This document shows positions 3,471 to 60,672 of a stretch of 64,000 bases of DNA, one piece after another. The DNA lies in NCBI GenBank assembly GCA_964036045.1, contig OZ038378.1:176080001-176144000 (forward strand). Direction: 5' to 3'. The first letter of the stretch is position 1. Each line of letters begins with the position of its first letter. This stretch comes from Eutreptiella sp. 'Long Island Sound 2002'. Its lineage: Eukaryota; Protista; Euglenida. Under the pieces are notes generated by a model. It ran no database searches. It saw only the letters and a list, made by a program, of their open reading frames with translations, and had not been told where the DNA came from. A program made the translations under genes and the position numbers.

Positions 3471-4083
3471 CAGAGTGAGTGTTGGGGTCCAAAATGGAGA
3501 GCAATGATGTGGCAAAAGCAGCCATGAAAGAAATTCTCGGGATCTTGTTCAGCCCAATCAACATGGTTGGCATGGACAAACCAGCTAGCTGCAAAGGTTA
3601 GGGGTAGGTTTATGGTGATGGTATGGTTACAGGGAGGGCAAGGGGAGGTAAGAGAGGCCTGTGCCCCCCCCCCCCAACCACCCCAAATTGCCCCACCTGG
3701 ATCCCCCCCCCCCACCCGAAATCGCTCCGCCTGCCCCCCCCCCCCCAACCCACCCTCCCAGAGCCCCCTCCCCCCGCCGCCCCTCCTAGACCCCCCCTGG
3801 TGCCCTGGCACCAGTCTAAAAACCCTCAGGATGGTAGCTAGCGGGACAGTTCCCGTATGCACTGCCAACGCGAGAGAACGAGGGTGAGGGCAACGAACAG
3901 GGAGCCAACCTCGTCCTGCGATACCCATAGCACAATACATCGATTCCCGGAGCGTACCAAATCCTTGGTGGCGCGAATCGCAGCATGGGACGATTCCCAT
4001 GGATGGTAATCGCTAGGGAGAGAGGTAGCTCCGGGGCCCAGAAACTTCCAACAGAGCGCGAGATCCAGCGGACCGACGATCCG

Positions 4084-6897: not shown

Positions 6898-7889
6898 TGA
6901 ACGTTGCTGAACGTTGCTGACAGTGGTATCATTTATTACTATCTACTCCAAAAAATGTTTGTTTGTTTGTTTGATTTGTTTGCCTGCCTGTCTTGTCCAT
7001 CTGTCTGTTTTTCCAGTCCATCCGTCCATCCGTCCATCTGCCTCTTTGTTTGTCTTCCTGTCTCTCTGTCTGCAATGCTCAGCAGCATCGCAAAACGTAC
7101 GCATTGCTGTAGTATTTCAATCCTGCATTTAAATGCCACAACAGTGCAATGCCTCATTGCAACAATGCTCGTCACTTGCGTAGTAATGCACTGCCAAAGC
7201 GCAACTGGGACAGCAATGCGCTGTCACAGTGCAGGGATGCTCAGCTGTAGCACGGCATTTCATACCTGACAGGGGTTTTGCGGACAACATGTCCATGTGC
7301 AAACGGGGTATTGTGAACACCAACGGCATGCACTGCAATAGTGCCATTGTGCAGCCATGCTCATAGCAGTGCTGCACTATACTGCCACAGTGCAGCAATG
7401 CTCGGCAGTGCTGTGATTGAGCATTTGTGCACAGTGAGCATGCACTGCGATTGATGAATGTCGCTGCACAGTGGCAAAACATTGCTGTGTTATGGTTGAG
7501 CATACCGCACAGTGGTGGTGCACTGCTCGCGGATGCTGCCAACTCTAGCGTCGGCAATACCCTTCGACTCGAACCAGGGGCCGTTATTCAGCAGTCCAGC
7601 TGCATGACCACTGCACATGGTGGCTGTCCCAGCAAAGAAAAGGCCTGTGATCCGCTGAGCCATTGGCCGCAGGGTCCAGCCCGTGGTACTCCACCTTTAA
7701 AACACCCCACATGCCTTGCTGGGTACCCAAAACATGTGGTCTTCTTCTGTCATTGCAGTCAAATCATTTCCTGCTCTTTTAAACCACGTTGCACATGGAG
7801 GTATGATTCCCGTTTCTTCAATTGTGAGTCGAATCTGCGGATCAGACGTTGAAGAACATGCAACAGCAAACGAAAGCACGGAGCAACAG

Positions 7890-23050: not shown

Positions 23051-23285
23051 GGGTCCGTGGTAAAACTGAGTAAAAAAAATTTTTTTTTACTCAGCTTCAA
23101 AACTGAGTAAAAAAACAATTTGTTACTTAGTAAGTGGGGTTTCTACTCAATTGCGAAACTGAGTAAAAAAATTTTTTTTTTTACTCAGTAAAGAACTGAG
23201 TAGAAAAAAAATATTTTTTTTTACTCAGTAAAGAACTGAGTAGAAAATTTTTTTTTTTTACTCAGTAAAGAACTGAGTAGAAAAA
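23051..23285 (+). mobile_element. Solo left arm of the foldback element found at 39563
   Basis: Starts with the identical GGGTCCGTGGTAAAACTGAGTA and the same actgagt(A)n(T)nactcagt modules. No partner arm seen. Confidence 0.8.
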
Positions 23286-24798
23286 ACCCCTCAGACCCCC
23301 CCCCTCCCCTTCTTCCAATGCAGGTGGAAGCCTGAGTTGGGGTCGTGGAAAAGTTTTTAGGTTGACAGTTTCAGGTGCAACTTGAGGGTGAATAATAGCA
23401 ACCACCCAGAGAGCGCCAGGAATCAACAGCAACCATCCAGAGAGCACCAGCAATATAGGCCAAAAAAATTTCCAGTGCGAAACCTTTCAAGGAGCAGTTG
23501 TCAAGGAGGAGGGTCAACCCCCCCCCCCCTTGACCCCCCCCCCTCCTCCGCTCCAATGCGTCCCTGGGGGGGGGTCCAAGGGGGGAAAGGGGGGGGATCA
23601 GGCAAGGGGGGCATGGGGTTGCCCTCAAGGACACGAATTTTTCGGAATTTTTACATTTTCAGCCGAAAATGTTTTTCAGATCCCAAGATCCTCTAAAGCA
23701 TGTTGTCACACCCTCTCATGTGTGTTTACTTGCTTGTGCTTTTGCGGGGTCCAGGCACCTGTCAATGTGGCCGCCAGAAGAAATTTTTTTCGCCCATGCG
23801 CAGAGGGTCTGCACGGATGATGCTTGGCCCGCCGTATCCCCTGAAAGTGCGTGTTACCAGCGTGCATTGTACCCGGGGCTCCCCTTGCGCAAGCACGGCG
23901 GAAGTTAGGGAATACGACGGTCAAACAGAGATTCCGTGCTTTGACAAGGCCACGCTTGCACATGATAAGCACCTGATTCTTTGGTTGGGTTGGGACCTCA
24001 TTGTCGCAACGTTTGCTGAAGAAGGAGTGGACTGCGGTCTGATTCAGAGCACTGCCCTGGGTCTGCCATGCATTCACCCCCCCCTAAAAAGCCTTCCTGT
24101 GGCTGAGCGGCAGGGCATTGCTGAGTGTTGCGTGAGAAGTGTTAGGGGTTCATAATTTGGACTGCGCCTTTGCACGCGGTGCACATGCAGTGTGCACACC
24201 GTGCAAAGGCTTTGTATTACCGCAAGTACGAACCTATTTCTAGCCTCCCTTCGCTCTGGGTATGAATCATGGGTTGTGGGCAATGGAGGATGCCGTTTGG
24301 AGAAAATGACAATGGTGAGTTGTGTTTTGGTGCATTGCTTTGGTGCTCTTGGGAGGCCCTCCCGTTCACATACGGTATGCAATGTGGCTTCCACCAACAA
24401 ATGTGCATTGCGTAGGTGTTCTCCAAGTGGAGGCAACTGACTGAGGGCCATGACTCTATCATCAGAGAGCAGCCGTGTTGCAGTGTACCTCAATTTGCGT
24501 TGACGCAACGCTGCTGTATGTGCCCTGCGCAAAGTGCGGGCCATGTGCTGTTCTGCAGCCCTACTCCATGGGTCCCGCTGCCCTGCAGTGGTCCCGCTCC
24601 ATGTGCCCTCTGCAGTGCATCTGTGTGGGCGTTCTGCGACCCTGCGCTGTGTGCTGTGCAGCTCCCTCTGCTCTGCCGTGTACCGTGCCGCACTCCCACT
24701 GCATTTCCCCTGCTGCAGCGCCCCCGCGTCGCGGATGCCTCGCTGACTGTCTCGTGCTGCAGGTCTCGGGTTGGGCGGCGGCGGCGCAGGTCCGCCGC

Positions 24799-26497: not shown

Positions 26498-27055
26498 TAT
26501 CCTTTGGCGAGCAGACGTCGTCTGGCGCTGGCGAGCGCATAGGCCTAAAAGCGTTTGCTGTTCTCAGGGGCCATTTGGGGCGGTGGTAGACAGCGGGACG
26601 TTCCGGGCGTAGTCGCTGCAAAGGTCGCGCGCACTGCGGCACACACGCAGTGCAAGCACTCCCCCATGCCCAAAGGAAAGACGGGGGGCGGCAGGCAGGG
26701 GCCGCGGGTATCCCAAGCGTATGGAGTGTATAGCCTGTACGCATGCCCAAAATGTATCACGACGGATGTTTGGGAGAATGGCACTGTGCCCGACTGCACA
26801 GGCCACTGCCGCTGTTCATTTGCACTGCGCACGGCTGTTGCCCAACGTCCATTGCCTCGCACTCGCCTTCCCTCTTGCTCTCCGCCCTTCCCCCTCTCCC
26901 CGCCCCTTCTTGTCCCCCCCCACCCCACGCCCATCTGTGGTCCCCGACGCTCCGGCTGGGCACCACACAGAGAGTCCCCTTCCGGGGGTGACAGTGGCGG
27001 CCGTCTGGCCGGTGTGGTGAGTGTGGGTGGGGTCTGGGCGGTGTGTTTGGCTCAG

Positions 27056-27385
27056 GTGTTTGACGAATATGCCCCGAACTTCGACGCGCATTTGACGGGG
27101 GAGCTGCGCTACGGCATTCCCGGGGAGCTCTTCAAGGCGCTGACGGACGCAACGGAGATTGAGGGGGGCGCAGGCCGCTATGGAACCGTTGTGGACGCCG
27201 GATGTGGCACCGGGCTGAGCGGGGAGCCATTCCGGCCCATCTGCCGGCACTTGGTCGGGGTGGACATCTCTGCTGGGATGCTGGACGAGGCCCGAAAGAA
27301 GGATATCTACGATGAGCTGCTGAATATGGATTTGGTTGCCGGCCTCGATGCGCAGGTCGCCGATTATGCCTCCCCCCAAGTCGAG
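27056..27385 (+). CDS. TPR + SAM-methyltransferase, exon 2
   Basis: ctcag|GTG acceptor. VFDEYAPNFD continues EGYVQQ. Contains motif I VVDAGCGTG and GVDIS. Donor GAG|GT at 27386 (alternative donor at 27380). Confidence 0.88.
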
Positions 27386-30300
27386 GTTTCGTCAGGAGGG
27401 GGGATTAATTAGGCCCCTTAAAACTGGGAGGAGCACGTGACGCGGCGCGCTTGATGCGGTGCAACAGTGAGGGCGACTGGGGGCAACTTGCAGGACTGGA
27501 ACGAGCATAGGGTGGGAGGGATAATTTTGCGGGAAGTTTTCGATGTTAAGGAAGGTGGCAAAAAGTTCCCCTGGCGAAGTGGCAATTTGATTTGCAAATC
27601 TTTTTTCATCTTGAACGGAGCAAGCATGTTAGGTTGTGCGTGAGGCAGTTGGAGCTTTGAGGTTTCCAAGGGTGGAACCCGAGCCCAAACAGTTGAATCT
27701 GATATTCGGGCGCGTCCTCCCATGGACAGTTGCGCCGTGTGCGCACCTGTTGACATGGTCGGTCATCCCGGTAACGGCCATATCCTCCATTTCACACTTT
27801 GCGCTACAACAGGGGGGGGGGATGGAGTGACTGGGATTATTTCACCATGGAGAATTTCGTAGGGGCAAAAGTTCGCCTGCCTCAGCAGGCCATGGATTTG
27901 GTCGTAGTTGGATTTTGCCGGCCCTGTCCACTAAGCTCTTTGGAAGATGGGTTGGGGGTCTCACAACAGGGCTCTATCGATCCTTCCCTCCATAATGGCG
28001 AGGGCACAATGGCTCCCGGGTCTTCAATTGCGAGAGAGTCTAGGCTAACAACTTGGGGTGCACTATGCGCATGCGTAGAGCCGTAAACGTGGAGCACGCG
28101 GGTGCGAAAAGTGACCTGGAATGCCAAAGGGGGGGTTGGAAGGCAGTTTGGCACAGTAACGTGAACGCTTACAGTGCCAACGCCGTAAACACCTACGGCT
28201 GGTGCCGTAAAGCAGCAGGGTATTAGAAGGGAAGCGGTCAGGGAGCAGGGAGCCTTAACCTGCCAGAGGAATAGAGACTGCACCCCCTGTCCCTTCTCTT
28301 CCCCTCTCCACAGGCAAGCACAACATGATGCAACAAGACCATACCGTAACATACAATGCTTGGGAATATTGCTCGGAATTTAGATGGTGCTGTACTTGCC
28401 ACAAAGTCCTGGCGATATGGCCAGCAACTTTTTGTAGCCCCACGGGCTGGGAAAAGCGCGCGGAAATTTTGCTCAGAAATTTGGATGCGGCTGGACCTGC
28501 CACAAAGTGCTCGCCATATCGCAAGCAAGGTTTCGGGCTGGGTTTGGAAGGGAAAACTGCTTGGAAAAACTGTGAAGATTGCAAATTGGTGCGGGCATTA
28601 CCGCTTTTCTGAGCAGGTGACTAAGTACATTTCAAAAAATTGGTTGCGAAAAGACACCACCCACACATTGCATTGTCATGAGAAGGAAGGTGTTTCAAGA
28701 TAAGGGGTTTTGCGACATGTGTTCTTATCTTGCTTTTGAGAAAGACATAGCATGGCATGGGATGCCAACCATGAAGTAGGCAAGCTAGGTCATTTGCAGG
28801 GTCTTTTGTGGGGTTTGAGGTAGGGTAGAGATGGAGACTTTGGATGAGGCATGGGGAACCTGCATAGTCCACTGGGTATAGGAAAGCACCATGGGTATAG
28901 GAAAGCACCAGGGGTAGTAGTAGGGGAAAGATTGGTGGAGGGTTGTGTCTCCGTTTTGTCTCAAGGCCAAAACTTGTCGACAGTGATCATATTAGTCCGC
29001 GCGACGTCCGAGGGCTCATCGACAAACCCCTTCTGTTGTCGTTGCGGTGGAATGGTTGATTGAAATATGTGTACGGAATATGTTTATGGAATTGGTGATT
29101 CAGTTTGTGAACCGGATTTTGGAGCTTGTCTCGGTTTTGAATGGATCCCCTGCCTCAACTCGCCGGCACCACATGGTGCTCGCCAGTTGCTTTAGGTGGG
29201 GAGGCTAAAAAGGAGAAACCTGCCGGGTGACGGTTTCTGTTGGGAGGAAAAAACAACCCACCCAAACCAAGGACCAGGCGGCTCCATCCCCCCCCTAGGA
29301 CCGACACAACCCCTTTGAAACCGCGGGTTATTTCATTCATGGTTGGACCAGGACACCTGCTGTAGTTGAGCATGGGCTTGAGGACAACAGACTCAAGGAT
29401 CACACATTATGCCCACTAAAGGCACAAAGTGCAGGAGCCGGGAGACATGGGATTGGGACAGCCTCTCTGCACTATGCCAACAGGTTAGTTCAACGGGACC
29501 TATTAGGAAGGTAACCACCTTTCAGGTACAGTTGGTTTGAGTGGTATGCTTTGTGGGCACAAGTCCACACCACACCAAACAAGCAAGGGCTGGCGCTGGG
29601 GTGGAAACCCTTGGGTCAACAAAACCCACCGGATCTGGTTTGTTTGCCTGAAAATTTTTCGGGGCTGCAGCTATATTGGAAATCCATGGTAGCTCCTCGG
29701 CCTAGTGGTACCTCAGTCACTTCAGCAACAAAACCTTATCCCGCGACATGGGGTTGTAGTGCTTTCCACACTTCTTTTGTACGGCGCCAGCACTATACTA
29801 TTTACTTTGGGGGTTTAACCCACAAAAACAAACCAGGGTTAGCACTGGGATTGAAACCCTTTGGCCAACGAAATCCAGCGGCTTTGTTTTGTTTCACTTC
29901 TGTTTACGGTGCCACCGTAGTGAATTATCAAGGCATTCTCTTCTTCTCATCCCCATAACATTCGCCATGTTGGAGGCGGGTCTCTTAGCCGGTACTGAGG
30001 AGTCCTTTAATTTTGGAACTACTGATGGGAGGTTCTGAGATGGCCTGGGGTTTGAAGGCACATTGTCCCAGGTTTCCCAGGCAACCGTACATGGGCCGCT
30101 TATGGCTTGGGTTAGGCTTGGGTTTGGGTTTCGGTTCAGGACCCGGCCTCACAGCCCCTTTTGCTTGTAGCCGAGAAACATCTAGGTGGGTTAGGAGTTG
30201 GGTCACATAAGTGGCAGCATGGTTGGCATCCTGTGTGGGTAATCGACCAAACATTGTTCGGCTCTCTTTTACCACGTCCTCTATTGGTGTACCGTCCCTT

Positions 30301-37652: not shown

Positions 37653-39945
37653 GAGGCAAAGGAGTGGCCTAGTCAGGAGCTGTGGGACTGTGATTTGGAC
37701 TCGGTGCTGCACCGAGTGGTATACAAACTGGGCATGCCTGCTGCCAGGGACACATTGGAAGGTGGGGCGGCGGGGGCTCCCACTCCTTTCAGTAGGCCGG
37801 CCTGCGCCCAAACCTCTCTCTCTTTCCCCCACGGGCCTTTCGCACGGCATTTGAAACCGAAAGGAACGACTCCAAACGGCTTTGCCAACCGCCTCCAAAC
37901 GCCATCGAAACGGCTCCCGACGCCCATTCTTGGGCCCTCTTCCGCTTGCAATGCGTCCCCGCCGCCCGCAACACGCCTACAGATCCGTCCCAGGGATGCC
38001 TCGCGGATACGCGGTGTAGCGCGGCCCGCTCTCCGACTCAGTCCGACAATGCTTCCACTTGTGCGGGGGGGGGGGGGGGGGTTTGGCGTCCACGTGCGCG
38101 TGACGACGCGGGGGGGTGCTCAGGCCCCAGGGATGTGTCCTACTGGTGCCATGGGTGCACCGCGGGCCCAGGCTGGGGTTGAGGTTCGGTGGACTGGGGC
38201 GTGCAGGCGGTATGGTGTCCCCCGGGTGCTTTGTGCCGGATACCGGGATGTGGGCCGGGCGGTGCGGGCTTGACAGCACGGCGGCTGGGGTCGGGGTCAT
38301 TGTCTGCTGGTGGGCGCTCAAGGGCATTTCGAATACCTGGAGTTCTCCTCCAGTGGCCCCAGTGTCCTTTTGCATTTTCTCCGTTCCTCTCAATCTCCCA
38401 TTCGCCTGAACTCCGCATTTTTCGACGGGTCTGGGACCTCCGGAAGGGGGTGAGGGAAGAACGTCATGAGCCATGGCCGGGCAGGCAGGCAGGCAGGCAG
38501 GCAAACGGCCGTTGTCACCCCTTGAGCACCTCGGCATGCGCGGGGTGGATTGAGCCGCAGGCGGTGTGCACCTGTGCGAAGGCACGTGGAGTGTCCAAGA
38601 CCCACCGCAAGCGTTACGGAGCTGCGGCGTGCAGCGCCAACAGTCGGGCATTCCGCGCCCATAAAGGCTTTGGGTGACAGATCTGAGGGGGCTTGGCACA
38701 TTCATGGCGCGCGTTTCTGGACGTGCCTCACGCGCCTCACACTCTGAGGGGTCCGGGGTCCCGTCCGTGCTCCGGACACCGCTCGGCCCGCGAGGATTGC
38801 CTTCTGTGTCTGCAACGGCCGAGGAAACCGGTTTGATGCGAAAGGGCCACGAGCCGTGAGCAGGCGACATTGGAGCAATGGGCCAACTCCTCACGGAGAC
38901 CCCGGCGGCCGAAGGGCGGGGCCCCTCGCGGCCAATGGCCGGTGTGGCAGGTCTGCAACCTTTGAAGGGGATCACGTCTGGCCTCCGCAAGGCCAGCCCC
39001 TGCCCAGCCCCGCAGTGGCCCAGACCGTGTTCGCTCGTACCCACAAATTTGCACCCCCCGGTCACCCGGCCACTCTCCCTCGCTATTCTCTCGACACAGC
39101 AGGGCACACAAAGGCCATGGCATCGGACATTACATGATGTCCCCCCAACTCTTTATGGAACTGCCCCCCCCACCCCCACCCCTTCCCACAGTACTGCGCA
39201 TTTTCGGGTGGACGGCCCGACACCCGTCATGCCCTCCCCCCCCCCTCTTATGGAACACTCCTCCCCCTTCCTCACAGCCCCGGGACACTGGCTGCACTAC
39301 ACGGTAGCCCCCCCCCCTCCCGCCTACATGGAACTTCCCCCAGAACATGGGATACCGTTGTAGTACATGGTGCCCCACCAGCCTTTCGGAAACCCTTCAC
39401 CAGTACGGCGTTTTTTTTGGGGGGGGCGTCTACGCAGGTTGACATATGGAACATAAGGCTTCCCTTGGGGGAACGTTAGCGCGCCGGGCGCGCGCCGGGC
39501 ATCTTTTGTGACCCGTGCCCTACCGGTGGACTGTTGCCGTTGATATGTTGGGCAACATTATAGGGTCCGTGGTAAAACTGAGTAAAAAAAATTTTTTTTT
39601 TTAAATTTTTTTTTTTACTCAGTTTCAAACTGAGTAACAATTTTTTTTTTTAATCAGTAAGTGGGGTTTCTACTCAGTTGCGAAACTGAGTAGAAAAAAA
39701 TTTTTTTTTTCTTCTCAGTAAAAAACTGAGTAGAAAAAAAATATTTTTTTTTACTCAGTAAGTGGGGTTTCTACTCAGTTGCGAAACTGAGTAGAAAAAA
39801 AAATTTTTTTTTTCTCAGTAAAAAACTGAGTAGGAAAAAAAATATTTTTTTTACTCAGTAAAAAACTGAGTAGAAAAAAAAATATTTTTTTTTACTCAGT
39901 AAAAAAATTAGTAGAAAAAAGCTCTTTTTTCTGATTTTGCCCCCC

Positions 39946-42900
39946 GCTCTGAAGCGGTGGGGATCCCTGATACGGCAGGGGTGAGGTAGCCATTTCGCCC
40001 ACTTGTGGGCCACTTCTGATTCTGCCCCCCGCTCTGAAGCGGTGGGGATCCCCGATACGGCAGGGGTGAGGTAGCCACTTTGCCCACTTTTGGGCCACTT
40101 CTGATTCTGCCCCCCGCTCTGAAGCGGTGGGGATCCCCGATACGGCAGGGGTGAGGTAGCCATTTCGCCCACTTGTGGGCCACTTCTGATTTTGCCCCCC
40201 GCTCTGAAGCGGTGGGGATCCCCGACACGGCAGGGGTGAGGTAGCCACTTTGCCCACTTGTGGGCCACTTCTGATTCTGCCCCCCGCTCTGAAGCGGTGG
40301 GGATCCCCGATACGGCAGGGGTGAGGTAGCCATTTCGCCCACTTGTGGGCCACTTCTGATTTTGCCCCCCGCTCTGAAGCGGTGGGGATCCCCGATACGG
40401 CAGGGGTGAGGTAGCCACTTTGCCCACTTGTGGGCCACTTCTGATTCTGCCCCCCGCTCTGAAGCGGTGGGGATCCCCGATACGGCAGGGGTGAGGTAGC
40501 CACTTTGCCCACTTGTGGGCCACTTCTGATTCTGCCCCCCGCTCTGAAGCGGTGGGGATCCCCGATACGGCAGGGGTGAGGTAGCCACTTTGCCCACTTG
40601 TGGGCCACTTCTGATTCTGCCCCCCGCTCTGAAGCGGTGGGGATCCCCGATACGGCAGGGGTGAGGTAGCCATTTCGCCCACTTATGGGCCACTTCTGAT
40701 TTTGCCCCCCGCTCTGAAGCGGTGGGGATCCCCGATACGGCAGGGGTGAGGTAGCCACTTTGCCCACTTGTGGGCCACTTCTGATTCTGCCCCCCGCTCT
40801 GAAGCGGTGGGGATCCCCGATACGGCAGGGGTGAGGTAGCCATTTCGCCCACTTGTGGGCCACTTCTGATTTTGCCCCCCGCTCTGAAGCGGTGGGGATC
40901 CCCGATACGGCAGGGGTGAGGTAGCCACTTTGCCCACTTGTGGGCCACTTCTGATTCTGCCCCCCGCTCTGAAGCGGTGGGGATCCCCGATACGGCAGGG
41001 GTGAGGTAGCCACTTTGCCCACTTGTGGGCCACTTCTGATTTTGCCCCCCGCTCTGAAGCGGTGGGGATCCCCGATACGGCAGGGGTGAGGTAGCCACTT
41101 TGCCCACTTGTGGGCCACTTCTGATTCTGCCCCCCGCTCTGAAGCGGTGGGGATCCCCGATACGGCAGGGGTGAGGTAGCCATTTCGCCCACTTGTGGGC
41201 CACTTCTGATTCTGCCCCCCGCTCTGAAGCGGTGGGGATCCCCGATACGGCGGGGGTGAGGTAGCCACTTTGGCCACTTGTGGGCCACTTCTGATTCTGC
41301 CCCCCGCTCTGAAGCGGTGGGGATCCCCGATACGGCAGGGGTGAGGTAGCCACTTTGCCCACTTGTGGGCCACTTCTGATTCTGCCCCCCGCATTGAAGC
41401 GGTGGGGATCCCCGATACGGCAGGGGTGAGGTAGCCATTTCGCCCACTTGTGGGCCACTTCTGATTTTGCCCCCCGCTCTGAAGCGGTGGGGATCCCCGA
41501 TACGGCAGGGGTGAGGTAGCCACTTTGCCCACTTGTGGGCCACTTCTGATTCTGCCCCCCGCTCTGAAGCGGTGGGGATCCCCGATACGGCAGGGGTGAG
41601 GTAGCCACTTTGCCCACTTGTGGGCCACTTCTGATTCTGCCCCCCGCTCTGAAGCGGTGGGGATCCCCGATACGGCAGGGGTGAGGTAGCCATTTCGCCC
41701 ACTTGTGGGCCACTTCTGATTCTGCCCCCCGCTCTGAAGCGGTGGGGATCCCCGATACGGCAGGGGTGAGGTAGCCACTTTGGCCACTTGTGGGCCACTT
41801 CTGATTCTGCCCCCCGCTCTGAAGCGGTGGGGATCCCCGATACGGCAGGGGTGAGGTAGCCATTTCGCCCACTTGTGGGCCACTTCTGATTCTGCCCCCC
41901 GCTCTGAAGCGGTGGGGATCCCCGATACGGCATGGGTGAGGTAGCCATTTTGCCCACTTGTGGGCCACTTCTGATTCTGCCCCCCGCTCTGAAGCGGTGG
42001 GGATCCCCGATACGGCAGGGGTGAGGTAGCCATTTCGCCCACTTGTGGGCCACTTCTGATTTTGCCCCCCGCTCTGAAGCGGTGGGGATCCCCGATACGG
42101 CAGGGGTGAGGTAGCCATTTCGCCCACTTGTGGGCCACTTCTGATTCTGCCCCCCGCTCTGAAGCGGTGGGGATCCCCGATACGGCATGGGTGAGGTAGC
42201 CATTTTGCCCACTTGTGGGCCACTTCTGATTCTGCCCCCCGCTCTGAAGCGGTGGGGATCCCCGATACGGCAGGGGTGAGGTAGCCATTTGGCCCACTTG
42301 TGGGCCACTTCTGATTTTGCCCCCCGCTCTGAAGCGGTGGGGATCCCCGATACGGCAGGGGTGAGGTAGCCACTTTGCCCACTTGTGGGCCACTTCTGAT
42401 TCTGCCCCCCGCTCTGAAGCGGTGGGGATCCCCGATACGGCAGGGGTGAGGTAGCCTTTTTGCCCACTTGTGGGCCACTTCTGATTCTGCCCCCCGCTCT
42501 GAAGCGGTGGGGATCCCCGATACGGCATGGGTGAGGTAGCCATTTCGCCCACTTGTGGGCCACTTCTGATTTTGCCCCCCGCTCTGAAGCGGTGGGGATC
42601 CCCGATACGGCAGGGGTGAGGTAGCCACTTTGCCCACTTGTGGGCCACTTCTGATTCTGCCCCCCGCTCTGAAGCGGTGGGGATCCCCGATACGGCAGGG
42701 GTGAGGTAGCCACTTTGCCCACTTGTGGGCCACTTCTGATTCTGCCCCCCGCTCTGAAGCGGTGGGGATCCCCGATACGGCATGGGTGAGGTAGCCACTT
42801 TGCCCACTTGTGGGCCACTTCTGATTTTGCCCCCCGCTCTGAAGCGGTGGGGATCCCCGATACGGCAGGGGTGAGGTAGCCATTTCGCCCACTTGTGGGC

Positions 42901-43670
42901 CACTTCTGATTCTGCCCCCCGCTCTGAAGCGGTGGGGATCCCCGATACGGCAGGGGTGAGGTAGCCACTTTGCCCACTTGTGGGCCACTTCTGATTCTGC
43001 CCCCCGCTCTGAAGCGGTGGGGATCCCCGATACGGCATGGGTGAGGTAGCCATTTGGCCCACTTGTGGGCCACTTCTGATTTTGCCCCCCGCTCTGAAGC
43101 GGTGGGGATCCCCGATACGGCAGGGGTGAGGTAGCCACTTTGCCCACTTGTGGGCCACTTCTGATTCTGCCCCCCGCTCTGAAGCGGTGGGGATCCCCGA
43201 TACGGCAGGGGTCCACTTGTGGGCCACTTCTGATTTTGCCCCCCGCTCTGAAGCGGTGGGGATCCCCGATACGGCAGGGGTGAGGTAGCCATTTCGCCCA
43301 CTTGTGGGCCACTTCTGATTTTGCCCCCCGCTCTGAAGCGGTGGGGATCCCCGATACGGCAGGGGTGAGGTAGCCATTTGGCCCACTTGTGGGCCACTTC
43401 TGATTCTGCCCCCCGCTCTGAAGCGGTGGGGATCCCCGATACGGCAGGGGTGAGGTAGCCATTTCGCCCACTTGTGGGCCACTTCTGATTCTGCCCCCCG
43501 CTCTGAAGCGGTGGGGATCCCCGATACGGCAGGGGTGAGGTAGCCATTTCGCCCACTTGTGGGCCACTTCTGATTTTGCCCCCCGCTCTGAAGCGGTGGG
43601 GATCCCCGATACGGCAGGGGTGAGGTAGCCATTTGGCCCACTTGTGGGCCACTTCTGATTTTGCCCCCCG
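39946..43670. repeat. Tandem array of 44 x 85-bp units; one unit (43176-43245) has a 15-bp deletion
   Basis: gctctgaagc recurs at 40201, 40286, 40541, 41221 and 42241 (multiples of 85). Units differ at only a few sites. Confidence 0.97.
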
Positions 43671-43977
43671 CTCTGATCGTACCCACCGTGCTTAGCTGGT
43701 TTTCGAACATTTTTTTTTCCGTTAAGGACACCCCTACTAAAGAACATAGAATCATTTGTTCCTCTTTGCTGACTCCCCAGGCGGCATGCGATCCATTTTT
43801 TTTCTAATGCCCTTCGTGCATGCAACAGTGTCCTCCATTAGCAAAGCTCTGCGGATGGCACCGAGGCATGCACGAAGAAATCGGCTACAACGAGTCCCGT
43901 GGGCACGGATGATACCCTTGGAATACACATGCAGTGTACTGTTGCTTGGTTGTTTGTGAATCTTTACCCTTGAGCTG

Positions 43978-45801
43978 ATGACGGAGCTTATTCATCATTC
44001 ATGGGCAAAGAGACACAGACCCATGGTGCGGTGCACTGCATGTGGGGGACCGACAATAAAATTGCATTACATCACCAGACTCATTATAAACATCCAATTA
44101 CATTCATGTTTGCAACACTCATTGTATTTGTGGTGCATCTACTGCGACGGGTGCATTCACTGCTTGGTTGGACTGGAGTGCCTAGCGAGACGGTTCAAGG
44201 ATAGGGATGAGGTAAAATGGGTGCTACAGAAGTGGGAGAAGGAGGTGGATGCCGAGACCATTTTGCACCCCACTCCCTCTGTGAACCGTGTTCCACCCAA
44301 TTCCATCCCGTCCGAAATTGCTGTAGGGACCCACCCAACTCCCTCTGTGAATGTGGACCCTATCCCGCCTAGTTCCATTCCGTCCGAAATTGTTGTCGCC
44401 ACACCCTGTACTGATAGCCCTCCAACATCTCATACTGGGTGTCGCCTTGCAGAACAAATCCTTGCTAATGTGTGCAAGGCACTCAGTGATAGCCATGGCT
44501 CGTTTCGCCCATCCTTGGCAGAGGTCGAGGCATTGCTTGGTGACGATTGGGGGCCGCCACTACATGCCACGGTTCCAGGTCCATCGGCTCAACAATATGA
44601 GTTCGAGGCACGCCATTTTAGGGACCTCACCTCCGAGAGCTATGTCACAAACTGTGCTCAAATTGTGGTGTATTACTGGTGGGCAGCCCAGACCGCTCTC
44701 AGTGCAGATTGGGACACAATGGGTGTGGCATGGGCAGTCCGTGGTTCGTTGTGGAATGTGTCGTGTGCCAGTCCACAACGCCGACAGGCATTGGTTGAAT
44801 CATGGGCGCGTAGCACTTTGGAACGCGCGTCCATTGATATGTCTTTTGCACCACCGTTGATTGTGGCGCAGATATATAATTCGCGTAATTTCCATTGGGT
44901 GCTCCGCTTGTTGCTGATTGCCCCTACCCGTGAATACCTTTGCCTTAAGTTTGACCCCCTCCTTGACAAGCCACACATTGTTGGGGCAAACAAGGAGGAG
45001 TTGGCTGTTGTGGATGAGCTTGCGGAGCGAGAAGGCATCCAACCACAACCGCGGAGGAAGTGGGCAACGTTTTTGGATGCTTTCGGTTCCCTTGCATTTG
45101 CAATTGCACCCCTGTATTCCACCTTCATCAGGCAGGATGATTTTGTCAGTTGCCATCCGGCATGTCTGTTGATGTTGCATTGTGCCTTGTCTAGACGTGT
45201 TGTCAAAGGCGATTTGCAAGTGCCACAGGATAGATTGTGGTTATTGCGTGAGATGGCACAAGCTACTTTGTACTACAGTCGTTCCAAGTTGGCCCCCACA
45301 CCCCGGACCCGGTCAATGCATTGGGAGGTGTCTCGGTTGTACCCCACGCCCAAATTTGCAGACCCCCCTGACACATGCTTTTTTTGCGATGGCACACCCG
45401 CCATAGCGTGTCAGGAATGTAAGGTTCTTCATTGTACCTTCCATACCACTGTCTTCTGTCAGTCCGAGATTTGTGTAGGATTGCGCCAATTCCGGGCGGC
45501 CCCCGTTGCTGCTGCTGCTGCTGCTGTTGTTGCTTTTGCTGCAGTTACTGCTGCCAATGCCACGCATGCCACTCCTGGCAATGCCAATGCCACTGATGAC
45601 ACCCGTCCCGGTGTGTGGATCTGTCGGAAGTGGTATGCGTTGCCTCCTCAATACCCCCAAAATGCTGATGGTCAATTGGAAAATGACCAAGCATTTTGCA
45701 GACAGCTGCATCTGGAAAAGAAAGAAGATCTCTTTGAGAGATGCAAGCTGAATCCTACCCCGAGAGGCAAGCCTCACAAGAGAGATATAAGGCCGACTTG
45801 A
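43978..45801 (+). CDS. 607-aa cargo protein: Cys-rich N-terminus, Ulp1/C48 peptidase-like domain, B-box-like Zn finger
   Basis: Uninterrupted ORF. NFHWVLRLL (His), LKFDPL (Asp) and RQDDFVSC (Gln..Cys) occur in Ulp1 order. CFFC..ACQECKVLHCTFH follows. Confidence 0.72.
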   Translation: MTELIHHSWAKRHRPMVRCTACGGPTIKLHYITRLIINIQLHSCLQHSLYLWCIYCDGCIHCLVGLECLARRFKDRDEVKWVLQKWEKEVDAETILHPTPSVNRVPPNSIPSEIAVGTHPTPSVNVDPIPPSSIPSEIVVATPCTDSPPTSHTGCRLAEQILANVCKALSDSHGSFRPSLAEVEALLGDDWGPPLHATVPGPSAQQYEFEARHFRDLTSESYVTNCAQIVVYYWWAAQTALSADWDTMGVAWAVRGSLWNVSCASPQRRQALVESWARSTLERASIDMSFAPPLIVAQIYNSRNFHWVLRLLLIAPTREYLCLKFDPLLDKPHIVGANKEELAVVDELAEREGIQPQPRRKWATFLDAFGSLAFAIAPLYSTFIRQDDFVSCHPACLLMLHCALSRRVVKGDLQVPQDRLWLLREMAQATLYYSRSKLAPTPRTRSMHWEVSRLYPTPKFADPPDTCFFCDGTPAIACQECKVLHCTFHTTVFCQSEICVGLRQFRAAPVAAAAAAVVAFAAVTAANATHATPGNANATDDTRPGVWICRKWYALPPQYPQNADGQLENDQAFCRQLHLEKKEDLFERCKLNPTPRGKPHKRDIRPT

Positions 45802-45975
45802 TCTTCAAGCGTGTCTTTTGTAACTACTTGTAAGTAGTTGGCCCCACCCTCCCTCCCTCCTCTGTGCATGCATGCATGCGATACTCAACCCTCTTTGGTG
45901 AAGTGGTTGTGTGATCCCTCCCTCCTCTGTGCATGCATGCAGACGGTACTCAACCCTCCTTGGTGAAGCGGTTGT

Positions 45976-45978
<3 letters not shown>

Positions 45979-46028
<50 letters not shown>
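45979..46028. repeat. (AT)25 microsatellite
   Basis: Read directly from the sequence. Confidence 0.95.
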
Positions 46029-46033
<5 letters not shown>

Positions 46034-46318
46034 TTTGGCCCGGGTGGGGCGCCACTAACACAAGTGGCCGGGAATCGACTCGGGGGCCTTGTGCCCTTAA
46101 ACAAAAGTACCACCTACCATCAAAGTGTGCAGTTTTTTGTGCATTTTTTTTCAAAAAAAAATTGTCTTTTTACTGAGTAAAAAAAATGATTTTTTTTAAA
46201 AAAAAATTTCTTAAAAAATTTTTTTACTCAGTTTTACCTCAAATCTACTCAGTTTTACCACATTTTACTCAGTTTTACCTCGTCTGGTACTCAGTTTTAC
46301 CAAATACCCAACATTATA

Positions 46319-46575: not shown

Positions 46576-46717
46576 AAGATGAGGCAGAGGATGAGGCAGA
46601 AGTGTGTGTGTTGTGTTGCCAGATCGCTCCACCGTCGCAGATGGTGGTGAGTGTAAGGAGCACTATTGTACTGAATGTATTGACACCCACACTTGTGGGA
46701 CCAATGTTATGATGCAG

Positions 46718-46863
46718 CTCTACTGTTCGCGATACCTCAATAACGCCTATCGCTTCTACTGGAGATCGATGCGGTTGTGCTATCCTAACCCCCCATTCTC
46801 CCAACTTGCTAAGGTGTTGACCAAGATCGCCCTTAAAGGAGCGAGAGTGGTACTGTGTACCCC
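46718..46863 (+). pseudogene. N6-adenine DNA methyltransferase-like fragment (DIRS/phage Dam type)
   Basis: LYCSRYLNNAYRFYWRSMRLCYPNPPFSQLAKVLTKIALKGARVVLCTP; NPPF motif IV at 46787-46798 with the typical vL.Ki....vl..P tail. Confidence 0.65.
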
Positions 46864-49800
46864 AGTTTGCAAGTTTCTTGAGCTGGGGCAGTTTGGGTCA
46901 CCTAATTCTAAGGGCGTTTCCAAGGGGTGTGCTTGGGGGCTCTTCGGGGGGAACATAGTCTAAAAGTAGCGCGCCGGGCAAACATTCCCCCCTTGGCTGC
47001 CCTCAAGCCACCCTTCAAGGCAAAGCTCTATCGCTTTGCCCATGCCGGATGTACCCAAAACGTTTCTGGGGTCTCTGTGCATCATCCTCTTCAGTAGCCA
47101 TAGCTGTCATTGTTGGGCAGTTCTTGTGGAAACAAAAAAGGTTTCTATTTTTCGTTTTTTGGTACTCGGGTTTATCCCCAGAAAAACGTTTACTTGGGTC
47201 ACATCTCTAAAAAAAAAAAACTTAAGTGCTTGGGTTACTCTGTGTTTGGTACTCGAGTTACATTTTCACGCCTTTGTTGAACAGACCTTCCCTGTCCCCA
47301 CAGCACTGCACACTGTGTGTACTCTGCGGTACCGCCCCGCAGCCGTTCAGGAACACCCTCCACCCCTTGAACTGCTGGAAATGACACGAGTATCAAAACC
47401 CCGGGTTCGCAAAAGCGTGCCCTCGGTCCTTTGCTCTGGTGCATGCCCCACGCGTGTGCTGCGCCCTTCTACCGCTGGGGTCTACACGGTTTTTGCTTCT
47501 CACTTCTTAATCTGGAGTCCGGCCCAAGTGGACGTGGACCTGCACATTGTCACCCCCCGGGTCCACTGCACAGGGCTGACCTGACCTCAAAGTGCGATGA
47601 GTGGGTGGACTGCAAGTCAACTGAGGTGGACTAGCAGTGGGATAGGGGCTGGCACAAGTCAACCCACCAGAAACAATCACAACTCTAACCCTCAGCCCTC
47701 AGGCCCACTGACTCATTCAGCGGGCTTGTTGTTATATATATGCAGGCGCACCCCCAACTCGGAACTACTGCAACCATTTGCCTGACGACTGGCGCCCAGA
47801 TGTTGAAGTGCAATAGTGTCCGTTCCGCCAGGATTGCTTCAGGCACGTGGCCACTGTTGGCCGCAGCATTTCGCGCATTTCAAAGCAGGAGAGCCGACCA
47901 GTTATTGGAGCACAATGAAGTGACCCTCGGGCACAATCCTATTCCCTGAACTATGCACCTGTGCAAGCGATCTGCAGAGTAGGACAACGAAGTCAGCACA
48001 GCACTGAAAGAGCCAGAAAAGCAGTCGATGGGTGGTTTCTGCTTGCTCGCACTCTGTCGAGCTCTTCTCTCAGCCTCTGACAAATTGAAGGACGGGAGCA
48101 ATAGAAGGTGCTGGGGAGCTGAATGTTTGACAAGCCTCCCCAAAAGGTTCTCGGGGCAACACAAGATGATGGACACCATTTGGTGTTGCCAATAAGTGTG
48201 TTGCACACTCCAACGAGAGGTATTCTATGTGCAGCTCATGTTGCATATTGTGTTTGTTGCGATGCGCAGACGCCCACATCCTCTGCTTTGATGAGTGGCA
48301 ACCATGCAACCCCCCCCCCCTTTCCTCCCATTTCCAACCCCCCCCCCCGCCTTTTACACTCACGTGACGTTTCACTCATGATTCCGCTCGAAAAGTCAGT
48401 ATTTATGGCGGCCGGAATGTGGACCAAGAATGCGGAATATACCCCCTGCTCCCTCCCCTGCGTGCTGCAGCTAATGGGGTTGGGACTGGAGCTGATGTCT
48501 GGTGAGACCAGTTCTTTGGATTCTCGGGGATGGGAGACCACGGGGTCGGGCAGATTTGTGGGTTAGGGGGGAGGGGACTCGGGGCAAGATGCAGACCGGT
48601 GGGTGCAGTGCAGATTGCATGTGCTCAACCTTGCCGCCCTCGGAGGAGGAGTAGGGATCCAGTGGTGAGCCAGACACTACAGAGAGAAAGGTCTGCCCTG
48701 TGCTACAGGCAAGCGGAGACATGGTGCTTGATAGTGTGCTACCGGTGTATCATAGTTTGGGTCTCGGCACAAATATTTTTGCCAATGCCCAGGACTCTGA
48801 ATGGGTATAGTGCTGGCCGCAATCAGCCCCGCAACTGCTTTGATCGAATTGTAGAATCAAATCTCATCTCCCTCGACTCAGTGGCCTGCCCCTGAGGGAG
48901 TGCCTCGATGCGCTGATGGGTCGCCTCGCCAAATCAAAGATGTTGGCTGGCACAACTAAGGTGAAGTGATGTGTGATCTCAGGTACGCACCATCTCCCAG
49001 GCCCAGGTATCCACTAGTCATCATGGCACTTTGATACTGTACCGACTGGTGAACTGGTGCCTGTGCTTCACCCGAAGATTTTCAACACCTGCGTTGCAGT
49101 AGTGGTTGTTGAGCAGCTCCCCTACACACACTGATCTCCTTGTTGTCCCAGTTGCGGTGGACCATTTGTTCATTGCCCACTGCTTGGCAGACGTACCGGC
49201 CTGTAAGCCCACCAACACCAAAGTGGCCCACTCACCACCGGACCCTAGAAAAAACGGGGAAACGGGAGGAAACGAGGCAAAACGGGACAAAAAAAAAAAC
49301 AACTAGAAATTTTTTGTAACATTTTTTCGAGTGTCAGGCGAGTCACTCGTGTGAGACCTAAAAAAAATTAGACAAAAAAGTAATTTTTTGAGTGTGAGTG
49401 GGAGCGCTTCAGAGCGGGGGACAAAATCAGCGGTGTCCCACAAGTGGGCATAACAAAAAAAATAGGGTTCATTAAGGCCTCCGCTTGGGCCACAATGGCT
49501 AAATGACCCGGAAATACCCCAAAGGGGGGGGTTGGACCTAAAACATGTACTGCCTGCGAGTAGCTAAGTTCTGTCACCGGGGCCTAGTGCACGGGCCTTG
49601 GGCACACTTATGAGACACAGCGTCCAAACCATTGGTGGTCACTGCACACGACCAACCAGGGGGTGGACTCACACGAGTCCCTAGCTCTGAGTCGTGGACA
49701 GCCCGGAGTGAAGTCCTCAAACAAGGAGCCCCCCAGCAGCCCAGAAAGCAAAAGAGCAACAAAACACCACATTCACCCTAGAACAACGCCAACAAACACC

Positions 49801-58041: not shown

Positions 58042-59277
58042 GTGCCTCGTCACCCAGGCCCTTGCCCACATGTGCACGTCCTCTGTCTGTGCCCTCCTGC
58101 CCTGCACTGGAGCCTGGCGCCAAAGGCATGGCGGTCCACTGAGTACGTCGACCAGTTGCAAGCACCACTACCCGAGACTGCAGGTCTTGCGGTGGTGTAT
58201 GCCCACAGGTAGTGCGGGTGCTGATGCCCACAGGTAGTGCGGGTGCTGGTGTACCCGAGCGTGTGCGGGCTCCACAGAACAATTAGTTGCCCCCCTTTGC
58301 GAGAACAAGGTGCCGTTTCCCAAACTTTTGCAACTATGTCCTACCCTGCCCTTTGTAAAATAACCCCCTTTGCAGAACGATGCGAGGTGTTGTTTCCGTC
58401 AAGTTTCGAGACTTTAGTCTTTACCTCGCAAGGGTGGTGGAGGGTATTTGTGACCCCCTCCTCCCTGACCGAGGGTTCATACTCGGGACTTTGAGGCGTT
58501 TGTCACGAACTCACTCTACTCCCTGCCGGGTATTGACCCCGGGTCCATCATCGCGGTACGACTGGGACCCACCGTATTTGCTGCAGGGCATTTGGGGGGG
58601 GGGGGGGGCAGGACGCTGGAAGAAAGCCGCACAGCAGCACCCGAACCAGGAAAACAGTGAAGGTCCTGCCTGTTCCCTGTGCCTGTGCCCGTGCCTGTGC
58701 CGCACCGCACGCCTCGGCCCCGTGTCCACTCGCTTCCCGGGCATATGCCCAGCTTCTGCGCCTTTGGTTTCACGGCGGGTGAAGAGCGTCCAGCGGCGCC
58801 ACGGCATCCCATTGGTAGCACACCGCCCGCATGGTTCCCACGCCGGCGGCTGGGGCTGCATGTGCACCCCGGCCCAGGGCCGTGAGGCGACTGATATGGG
58901 GGGAGGAGCACAGGGCTTACCATTTTTGCTCCCCCCCCCCCCCCCCGGTCTCTCCGGGGAATGACATGGTGTGTGTGTGTGCGCGTGAGTGTGGGCCGGA
59001 AGCCCCGGACGTGACACCGACCAGGGTCCCCAAGGAGCGTGGGTATGGAAACTTCACCCGCCGGTCTCGGACTGGGTCAGTGGTGGTTTGTGTGGCTCCG
59101 AGTCCAGCGCGCGGCAGCCTGTGGCACAAGCCGCTGACACATAGGGTCGGCCTGGCGACGTGTCTGGCAGGTGTTGGACACACTCCCATCCCCCGGTCTC
59201 TCCCACGGGGACATCTGTGCTGTGCCTTGTCGCCTTGGCGCCGCCGCCTGTTCCCTCACGCTCCTGCCCTGTCGCAG

Positions 59278-59547
59278 GTGCAGGAGCCGCTGATGCACCT
59301 TGCGATCGCCGGGTACCGCATCGTGGTCACTGGCCACTCCCTCGGGGCCGGAGTCGCCGCGTTCGTGACGCTGCTGCTGCGCCGGACGCTGCCGCGGGTG
59401 ACCGGGGTCGGGTACGCGACCCCAACGACGATGACCCTGGATCTCGCGATGCACAGCGCCGCGTTCTTCACGACCGTTGTGCTCGGCGACGACATCGTGC
59501 CACGCATCAGCGTCGGGGCCGTCCAGACGCTGGTACGTCAGGCGAAG
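59278..59547 (+). CDS. FYVE + lipase gene, exon 5 (catalytic Ser and Asp)
   Basis: gcag|GTG acceptor and AAG|GT donor; VTGHSLGAG (GxSxG), YATP and DDIVPR. Confidence 0.9.
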
Positions 59548-59879
59548 GTATCAGGCCGTTGTGCAGGACGCTCCCACCGGCACATCCAGACTCCCGTTGC
59601 CAAAGTGTCGGCACTGCACACGGACTCGGGGTACTGTGGGGCGGATCCCGCTCAAGACGCGTGTTGGACGTTGGGTGACTCGTTCCGGTTCGACGAGAGC
59701 CTGGTGGGCCCTCGGAGTCCCTCCTTTGCAGATCGAGGGGCGCGGTGCACACTCACCGGCCCGTCAATCGGAGGGGGCGGGGGGAGGTGCCCGCCACGGG
59801 GGTGGCAACAGGGCCGTGAGCAACCAACCGCGCACGGGACAGTCCACGTTGTACGGAGATGTGAAATCCTCGTACGGGG

Positions 59880-60672
59880 GGGCAGGCGGGTGGGACAGGA
59901 GGGGGTGCGCGACATGGGCACCCAGGAGCGCCACGAGACAGGGGGAGGAGCAACACAGACACACAGAACGCGGGAGCCACACCAAGAGGGACAAGGGCGA
60001 GCACAGCAGACAAGGAGGAGGGGCACAGCAAGGCAGGAGAGGCAACCAGAACAGCGGGAACAGGGAACCAGAATGGAGCGGATGGTGGAGCATGCGCATG
60101 GGAGGCAGCGACAATAAAGGGGATGGCTTGGCCAGCCAGCCCCGTCGCTACCGGGTGCCAAGGCAACCCCTGCTCAACCGGCATCAGGTGGGGGGTGTCT
60201 CCCGCAGCCCAGATGGGCTGTTTGCGCAACAGGAGCGGGAGCCCATCAGGGGGCAGACCAGCCCTGAGGGGGAAAAGCACACACGCACGGCCCGGACAGC
60301 GCGTGGAGGAACAGGGCACCTGGGCCGCACAGAAACACAGCGAGGCAGGCTATGGACGGCCTGTGGACAGAGGTGTGTGGACAGCAAAAACAGTCAAAAG
60401 ACCCGGCAACAACCAGCACAACCCCAATACGCCAATTATTGGGCGCCGCTAACGTGCAAACGGCACATCCTGCCACATTCAGCACAGCCCCAACACACCA
60501 ACTACTGGGCTCCGCGAACGCGGAGCCGACACCAGCAAGAGCACCGGCCGCAGCGGCCGACAGAACGCAGCGACCCGACGCAACATGCGAAGGGAAGAAC
60601 GGGTGACCGTCCAGGGCCCCGTAAAGGAGCAACAACCAGACGGAATGTCACACAAGGGGGGGGGGGGGGGGC
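59880..60672. repeat. Probable interspersed repeat (SINE/LINE-tail like) ending in a G17 tract
   Basis: Internal duplication (ccaatacgccaattattgggc / ccaacacaccaactactgggc), purine/C bias, and an abrupt G-run end. Only one copy in the window. Confidence 0.35.

Follow-up and report, generated by a model that had tools for sequence, protein, structure and literature searches.

A stretch of 64,000 nucleotides from the euglenid Eutreptiella sp. 'Long Island Sound 2002' (contig OZ038378.1, positions 176,080,001 to 176,144,000, or C1:176080001-176144000 in our contig numbering; hereafter the window) was analysed together with the genome from which it comes, which was searched as 2.28 Gb in 2,317 contigs. 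The window contains an element of 6,746 bp (39564-46309), bounded by an exact 9-bp target-site duplication (TSD) read directly from its flanks, with a hairpin-rich arm at either end, a satellite array and an open reading frame (ORF) of 607 aa. Comparison with related copies elsewhere in the genome suggests that this element is very probably an internally deleted, non-autonomous copy of a young Mutator-superfamily transposon, in which the ORF would represent the tail of the transposase. Its features are listed below in window coordinates, with the strand where one applies and the source of the assignment.

39555-39563: left copy of the TSD, aacattata; the same 9-mer stands at 46310-46318
39564-39584, + strand: left terminal inverted repeat (TIR), GGGTCCGTGGTAAAACTGAGT; this terminus recurs in an intact copy on contig C14 and in five other elements
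39564-39928: left arm of ACTGAGT-(A)n(T)n-ACTCAGT hairpin modules (inverted-pair listing, Tandem Repeats Finder (TRF), DNA folding)
39929-43676: array of an 85-bp satellite, about 44 units, integral to the transposon family (TRF, 96% matches)
43677-44123, + strand: leader, normally 5' of the transposase ORF and ending here at the deletion junction (97% identity to the intact element up to its coordinate 3452)
43978-45801, + strand: chimeric ORF of 607 aa, made of 49 read-in codons, about 551 codons of the transposase C-terminus and a short frameshifted tail
44123-44124: deletion junction, where 3,447 bp of the intact element (its coordinates 3453-6899) are missing, with 2-bp TG microhomology (blastn against the intact copy)
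44620-45297, + strand: putative Ulp1/C48-like (CE-clan) domain, ORF residues ~215-440, with H306-W307, D326, Q386 and C392; assignment not proven
45376-45474, + strand: Cys/His zinc-finger-like motif, C467-C499, CxxC-x7-CxxC-x4-CxxH-x4-C-x4-C (from the translation; kept in relatives)
45787-45788, + strand: loss of 1 nt in this copy alone, which shifts the reading frame near the end of the ORF and gives the short tail in place of the normal end (comparison with the intact copy)
45850-46028: 65-bp direct duplication followed by an (AT)25 microsatellite, in the 3' non-coding part (TRF)
46133-46309: right arm of A/T hairpin modules with four 13-mers (46226, 46247, 46267 and 46289), the last being the right TIR
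46310-46318: right copy of the TSD, aacattata (read directly)

An exact 9-mer match at fixed positions, as seen for the two TSD copies, has a chance probability of about 4e-6. The ends enclosed by the TSD are imperfect inverted repeats, as the right end (46289-46309), when reverse complemented, reads GGGTATTTGGTAAAACTGAGT and is identical to the left end at 18/21 positions. A 13-mer within the termini, GGTAAAACTGAGT, was found six times in the window in comparison to 0.07 expected occurrences, with one copy at the left end (39571-39583) and four in tandem at the right end at a spacing of about 20 bp. This asymmetry, with four copies at the ORF-proximal end and one at the satellite-proximal end, recurred in the other elements examined (loci L033-L060), and the two TIRs differed at the same three bases (CCG versus ATT) in every copy examined. 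Folding of the left arm (39564-39925) as single-stranded DNA gave -89.7 kcal/mol, with z = -13.9 against shuffled sequences. The exact TSD, the inverted termini, the arms of actgagt(A)n(T)nactcagt modules and the 3.7-kb array, which was found to have an 85-bp period, had all been described in an earlier account of this DNA based on the letters of the window (the original prediction), and all were confirmed here. Its 'Foldback' label fits the element only loosely. Like Foldback (FB) elements, the window copy is flanked by a 9-bp TSD and has termini full of short inverted or tandem modules that are able to fold back, but its arms are short (~365 and ~177 bp) and share short modules only, the best match between them being 31 nt at 94%, and its array is confined to the left side, with no inverted counterpart on the right. 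An Rfam search of the window returned nothing.

The origin of the 607-aa ORF was resolved by comparison with the rest of the genome. A search with the 607-aa protein identified at least 72 further loci at 89-98% identity, all of which aligned solely from query residue 46 onwards and many of which were in longer open frames of up to 1,425 codons. An intact element was located on contig C14 (locus L065), with a length of 9,087 bp, a single ORF of 1,420 aa and an exact 9-bp TSD (CCAAGGATT), and its termini, hairpin arm and satellite, here with 31 units, were the same as those of the window copy. From left to right the intact element consists of the TIR, the hairpin arm, the 85-bp satellite, a leader of approximately 1.4 kb and the 1,420-aa ORF; a short 3' region then leads to the right arm, in which a run of four subterminal 13-mers ends in the TIR. 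The window element was collinear with this copy at 97-100% identity save for one gap of 3,447 bp, and since the alignment also breaks near the (AT)25 tract, the length of this microsatellite may vary between copies.

The 3,447-bp deletion takes approximately 0.9 kb of the leader (its 3' part) as well as codons 1-837 of the transposase ORF, the whole MULE core included. As the MULE core is lost and the 607-aa ORF had no Pfam match at E<=10, the window copy is considered non-autonomous, in agreement with the original prediction, whose statement that the element has no transposase therefore holds for this copy and not for the family, in which the intact relative has a MULE ORF. A 29-mer spanning the deletion junction occurs once in the genome, and the window derivative is a single locus rather than an amplified subfamily. 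Starting from an intact 9,087-bp element, the loss of the 3' part of the leader and of the first 837 codons would most likely have occurred by abortive gap repair or in place, because of the 2-bp microhomology at the junction, and would have brought a chance upstream ATG into frame with the surviving 551 C-terminal codons. As both ends are kept, transposase from intact copies may still be able to mobilise the window copy in trans.

Both ends of the 607-aa reading frame bear marks of this history. The ATG at 43978 sits in leader DNA, and in the intact copy the same frame meets a stop at codon 127 and eight stops before the long ORF begins, indicating that the first 49 residues of the window ORF are fortuitous. 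At the other end, the base missing between 45787 and 45788 was present in 29/29 other aligned copies. The unique junction, the 49 fortuitous codons and the private frameshift together indicate that the ORF is a transposase remnant and not intact cargo. The uninterrupted frame of 607 codons reported earlier does exist, but it cannot be called intact, being 5'-truncated by 3,447 bp and 3'-frameshifted by 1 nt.

These observations bear directly on the interpretation first offered for this locus, that of a transposase-less Foldback/Mutator family that keeps a captured host Ulp1-like protease as intact cargo, perhaps as an anti-silencing factor. The ORF is indeed open over its 607 codons, the region is also stop-free in most other copies, and plant MULEs with captured ULP genes are known (PMC2836005). 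However, longer copies have this region and the MULE core in a single unbroken reading frame, whereas the window ORF begins in non-coding leader, ends in a frameshift and has a junction that is confined to the window locus. A genome scan with the Peptidase_C48 profile PF02902 found 41 places, none of which was in the family copies found by the 607-aa and N-terminal searches and none of which was similar enough to be a host donor of the module, and the changes private to single copies have a ratio of non-synonymous to synonymous substitution (dN/dS) that also speaks against a maintained cargo gene (0.79; see below). The captured-cargo interpretation, which is largely refuted already by the intact copy, is therefore very improbable, and the protease-like ORF instead represents the C-terminus of the 1,420-aa transposase ORF that the family itself encodes.

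The assignment of this transposase to the Mutator superfamily was supported by profile matches. Residues 402-490 of the 1,420-aa ORF matched PF10551 (MULE) with an E of 1.6e-4 for the whole protein and 5.1e-5 for a 600-aa piece, over positions 13-99 of the 99 in the profile, and the relatives P0035, P0195 and P0192 (43-44% identity) each matched MULE at approximately 1.5e-3 and Transposase_mut (PF00872) at approximately 0.013 over the homologous stretch. Judged by eye, the residues DGT...SDG...CYWH are what we take to be a MuDR-type D-D-CxxH signature, and the CxC...C that comes after them presumably a SWIM-like motif. The predicted order of the ORF, as read from its sequence, is N-terminal repeats, a MULE DDE core, the SWIM-like Cys motif, a Cys-rich finger, a Pro-rich linker, the putative Ulp1-like domain, a zinc finger and a basic tail. 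Merlin and hAT were tried as alternative superfamilies and ruled out, as the transposase matches only Mutator-clan profiles and the TSDs are consistently 9 bp. With 9-bp TSDs in 8/8 elements and the MULE match in the intact ORF, the Mutator-type assignment made in the original prediction is upheld.

Likeness of the window family to MULE/MuDR elements extends to the 9-bp TSDs, TIRs with subterminal repeats, a DDE transposase with the MULE signature (D...D...CxxH) followed by a SWIM-like Cys motif, and heterogeneous internally deleted non-autonomous copies alongside few intact ones. In contrast to those elements, the window family has a euglenid host, a very divergent transposase with a sub-threshold Pfam score, short 21-bp TIRs (18/21), the one-versus-four asymmetry of terminal repeats and a multi-kb internal satellite. 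Several points weigh against our interpretation of the element as a deleted Mutator transposon with a transposase tail: the MULE score of 24.1 bits lies under the Pfam gathering score of 27.6 bits; only approximately 36 loci were inspected as DNA; the deletion may have arisen before or after insertion; and for the protease assignment of the C-terminal module, taken up below, no significant profile or fold match was found.

The original prediction had proposed a genome-wide search for the element terminus to collect copies, TSDs and an autonomous partner; the intact C14 element, which was found with the 607-aa protein, is a candidate for such a partner. The terminal 19-mer GGTAAAACTGAGTAAAAAA was found 449 times in forward and 443 times in reverse orientation, in comparison to 20 and 37 for the control, and paired terminus matches stood 0.4 to ~11 kb apart, which points to a family population that spans MITE-like stubs (MITE, miniature inverted-repeat transposable element) to full-length elements. 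The 21-bp TIR (18/21 complementary) was kept in all elements inspected. TSDs of 9 bp were found in 8/8 elements with both ends readable, six exact and two at 8/9; beyond the window and C14 copies, this includes six elements, four with exact TSDs and two with one mismatch. Nearly every copy at the 30 loci inspected had its own internal deletion, with one deletion common to loci L015 and L018, indicating that derivatives can be mobilised. A genome search with the N-terminal 837 aa found one complete stop-free copy, graded 5'-truncated remnants and older subfamilies at 41-66% identity. One further left end was noted within the window itself, at 23051-23290, where GGGTCCGTGGTAAAACTGAGT is followed by approximately 240 bp of hairpin modules; no satellite comes after it and no matching right end was found within the window. 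This solitary end probably belongs to a stub or otherwise truncated member of the family.

The DNA of the C-terminal region was 98-99% identical between copies, and among the 30 best copies the C-terminal frame had approximately 0.17 stops per copy. Together with the presence of an intact copy, this identity bears out the earlier description of a recently mobile, young family. Substitutions were counted against a majority sequence of the copies computed in the analysis script. Changes found in a single copy gave a dN/dS of 0.79 (83 non-synonymous, 32 synonymous), in comparison to 0.30 for variants common to two or more copies (17 non-synonymous, 17 synonymous, where 26:8 would be expected if neutral). 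This difference means that the module was under constraint during propagation of the lineage, as would be expected of a piece of the transposase, with inserted copies decaying almost neutrally. The original prediction would have been refuted by other copies without 9-bp TSDs or never with the ORF, or by a dN/dS near 1 together with no expression; the TSDs were present in all eight readable elements and the ORF region in at least 72 further loci, while singleton changes approached neutrality.

Proteins of this family are numerous in public assemblies. The predicted protein P0001 represents 175 members, an exhaustive search with a hidden Markov model found 355 proteins, of which the best 150 were all fragments of the same family, and word searches returned only family members, all without Pfam annotation. 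Related loci were also sought in metagenomes, where no relatives were found. The abundance of such predicted proteins, together with a C-terminal frame that is open in many derivatives, could be taken to mean that the truncated ORF is expressed and regulates transposition. Its product would then be a transposase tail without catalytic activity that titrates the full-length enzyme or modifies it, much as is the case for the KP product of the P element or for truncated Ac products. However, the openness of the frame is accounted for by the youth of the copies, singleton changes are near neutral, and the end points of the deletions are varied with no favoured product. A regulatory role for the truncated ORF is therefore considered unlikely, and the element is better described as an ordinary deletion derivative with a remnant of its transposase.

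The C-terminal module itself, which would belong to the transposase rather than to a captured gene, is more difficult to classify. The residues H306, D326, Q386 and C392 were present in 30/30 genomic copies (one with a D-to-E change) and also in P0186, a relative at 33% identity in which an upstream Y-[VI]-T-D...Y-W-W motif is likewise kept. The order and spacing of these residues resemble what we take to be the W-L-N-D, H-W, D and Q-x5-C motifs of Ulp1, a likeness that served as a lead and is no test, and Ulp1 and the SENPs are reportedly characterized by the same Q-to-C spacing of 6. Directly following the Cys, H or M stands in place of the usual G. When the window domain and P0186 were used as queries against the ESM Atlas, three PHD+Peptidase_C48 clusters came first for both, at scores of 0.88-0.89 with 165-170 shared features, although by the tool's own caveat such feature scores are leads only; these nearest clusters come from cnidarians and chordates.

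Direct searches for the domain were uniformly negative. PF02902 had no match at E<=10 in the ORF, ten diverged relatives, P0186 or 107 family members, and profile and single-sequence searches against PDB sequences gave only weak zinc-finger or noise matches. An hhalign comparison with E. coli ElaD, the one bona fide C48 sequence used, gave a match probability of 0.3%, with the sole local match on the GGHW strand that carries the His. An AlphaFold (AF2) model from 11 sequences was unusable (mean predicted local distance difference test (pLDDT) score of 37.6), and a second model from 107 sequences was still poor, with a mean of 57.0 and 77-82 in the core. With the latter, the best Foldseek match had an E of 0.33, with XopD, NopD and OtDUB in the non-significant top 40, and the best VIA-align match, to helical hairpins, had a Z of 5.7. 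In this model of mean pLDDT 57 the His opens a strand, the Asp closes the next strand and the Cys stands just before a helix.

These results can be read in two ways. The module may be a non-catalytic, lineage-specific protein- or DNA-binding domain whose H/D/Q/C likeness to C48 arose by chance or is a dead remnant, in keeping with the silence of PF02902 across the ORF, its relatives and the 107 members, a genome scan that misses the family, the lack of a significant match by PDB profiles, hhalign, Foldseek or VIA, and the H or M where G is usual. Against this, the H-W, D and Q-x5-C residues and the Y-[VI]-T-D...Y-W-W motif are kept down to 33% identity and in all 30 copies, and their order and Q-to-C spacing fit those of Ulp1/SENPs. 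Two queries only 33% identical to each other both had PHD+Peptidase_C48 clusters as their nearest, XopD, NopD and OtDUB were among the non-significant structural matches, and the strand positions of His and Asp and the helix position of Cys in the model also argue for a protease. A non-catalytic binding domain is a possibility that we take seriously but hold to be the less probable one; we lean, with reservation, towards a very divergent Ulp1/CE-clan cysteine protease domain. The C48 protease named in the original prediction accordingly stands as to the conserved H-D-Q-C order, and lacks a significant match in Pfam, PDB profiles, hhalign or Foldseek. The finger that follows was likewise confirmed as a Cys/His finger, but it looks more HIT/PHD-like than the B-box proposed earlier. 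All of its matches were weak (zf-HIT, E 0.03; zf-AtTam37, E 0.03; Transp_Tc5_C, E 7e-4, in P0186; AF-10 PHD, E 0.7), and from its residue pattern we would call C467-C499 an unclassified finger of cross-brace type.

Ulp1 domains have been described in Mutator transposons of hydra, lancelet, Arabidopsis, maize, rice and melon, and the Ulp1+PHD domains of Ginger1 and Mutator transposases have been aligned (Bao, Kapitonov and Jurka 2010, PMC2836005); the plant KI-MULE/CUMULE elements also carry ULP1 genes (Hoen 2006, van Leeuwen 2007, as cited in PMC2836005). The architecture proposed here is hence of an already known kind. The window family resembles these transposases in that a putative cysteine-protease module, and after it a zinc finger, stand C-terminal of or beside a Mutator transposase. 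It differs in that the published domains are recognised by pfam02902 and its own is not, in the H or M in place of G after the Cys, in a finger that is not clearly PHD, and in the existence of the relative P0195 without the module. This relative (43% identity) aligns only to residue 885 and the protease-like module is missing from it, indicating that the module is an accessory addition in the lineage of the window family. P0195, P0192 and P0035, which are found on contigs of 3-6 kb (ENA, JGI/IMG), share the N-terminal repeats, core, SWIM-like motif and Cys-rich finger and are without the protease-like module. A more far-reaching proposal would be that euglenid Mutator transposases carry an unrecognisably divergent C-terminal cysteine protease, and that the hundreds of deletion derivatives in which it is retained, the window copy among them, yield the protease and finger as separate proteins, with an influence on SUMO/ubiquitin-dependent silencing or repair that benefits the family; we regard this as quite unlikely.

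The satellite forms a structural part of the element and is spread by it. TRF scored the array higher at periods of 170 and 255 than at 85. The number of units varies between approximately 44 in the window copy and 31 in the C14 copy, with the array between the left arm and the leader in both. The first-listed arrays on C1 adjoin family termini, and this, together with the presence of the same array in the intact copy, indicates that the satellite is inherited and dispersed by the transposon. Long stop-free frames within the array were considered as coding sequence and rejected, as they reflect mere repetition of the 85-bp unit. A 46-nt core of the unit was found at least 73,700 times in the genome in comparison to 0 for the control. 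This number (~6 Mb) is several times what would be expected from approximately 450 element pairs with 30-45 units each, and the excess implies either many more elements or independent arrays. Satellite-carrying DNA transposons of the MULE, hAT and CACTA types similarly have an inherited tandem array of variable unit number that spreads through the genome by transposition, but here the array occupies a large share of its element (3.7 of 6.7 kb) and the units total at least 73,700 genome-wide.

Other features of the window were noted in the course of the analysis. Directly to the right of the insertion, an ORF of 119 aa (46604-46963, + strand) has a weak match to a Dam-like methyltransferase (PF05869, E 0.009) and carries an NPPF...ARVVLCTP motif that recalls DIRS-type tyrosine-recombinase retroelements, suggesting that the transposon may have landed in or next to such a retroelement. 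Further away, a class-3 lipase domain (PF01764, E 4e-12) is encoded by an ORF at 58831-60114 (+ strand) and an S-adenosylmethionine-dependent methyltransferase domain (PF13649, E 4e-7) by an ORF at 26555-27409 (+ strand); both are probably exons of host genes. The genome was also searched with a 24-mer that we take to be the spliced leader of Euglena gracilis, which occurred 5,458 times in comparison to 0 for the reversed control, a count that by itself would place the host most probably in or close to E. gracilis. Its copies are scattered on chromosome 1 on both strands and are not restricted to tandem arrays of spliced-leader RNA (SL-RNA) genes, and they could be dispersed SL-RNA genes or retroposed copies bearing the spliced leader.

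In summary, the window element points to a young Mutator family in a euglenid that is probably still active. The family includes at least one intact element, and its deletion derivatives number in the hundreds. To our knowledge, DNA transposons are poorly described in this lineage, and the novelty here is modest, consisting of the euglenid host, a transposase and a putative protease that are both extremely divergent, the one-versus-four terminal repeats and the large internal satellite. A satellite of at least 6 Mb with an 85-bp unit is carried, at least partly, inside a Mutator transposon. For annotation, the finding means that transposase tails account for hundreds of the 300-600-aa 'hypothetical proteins' listed in public assemblies of this genome. 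If the Ulp1-like nature of the divergent module is true, it would extend to Euglenozoa an association between deSUMOylase-like domains and Mutator transposons that is itself already published.

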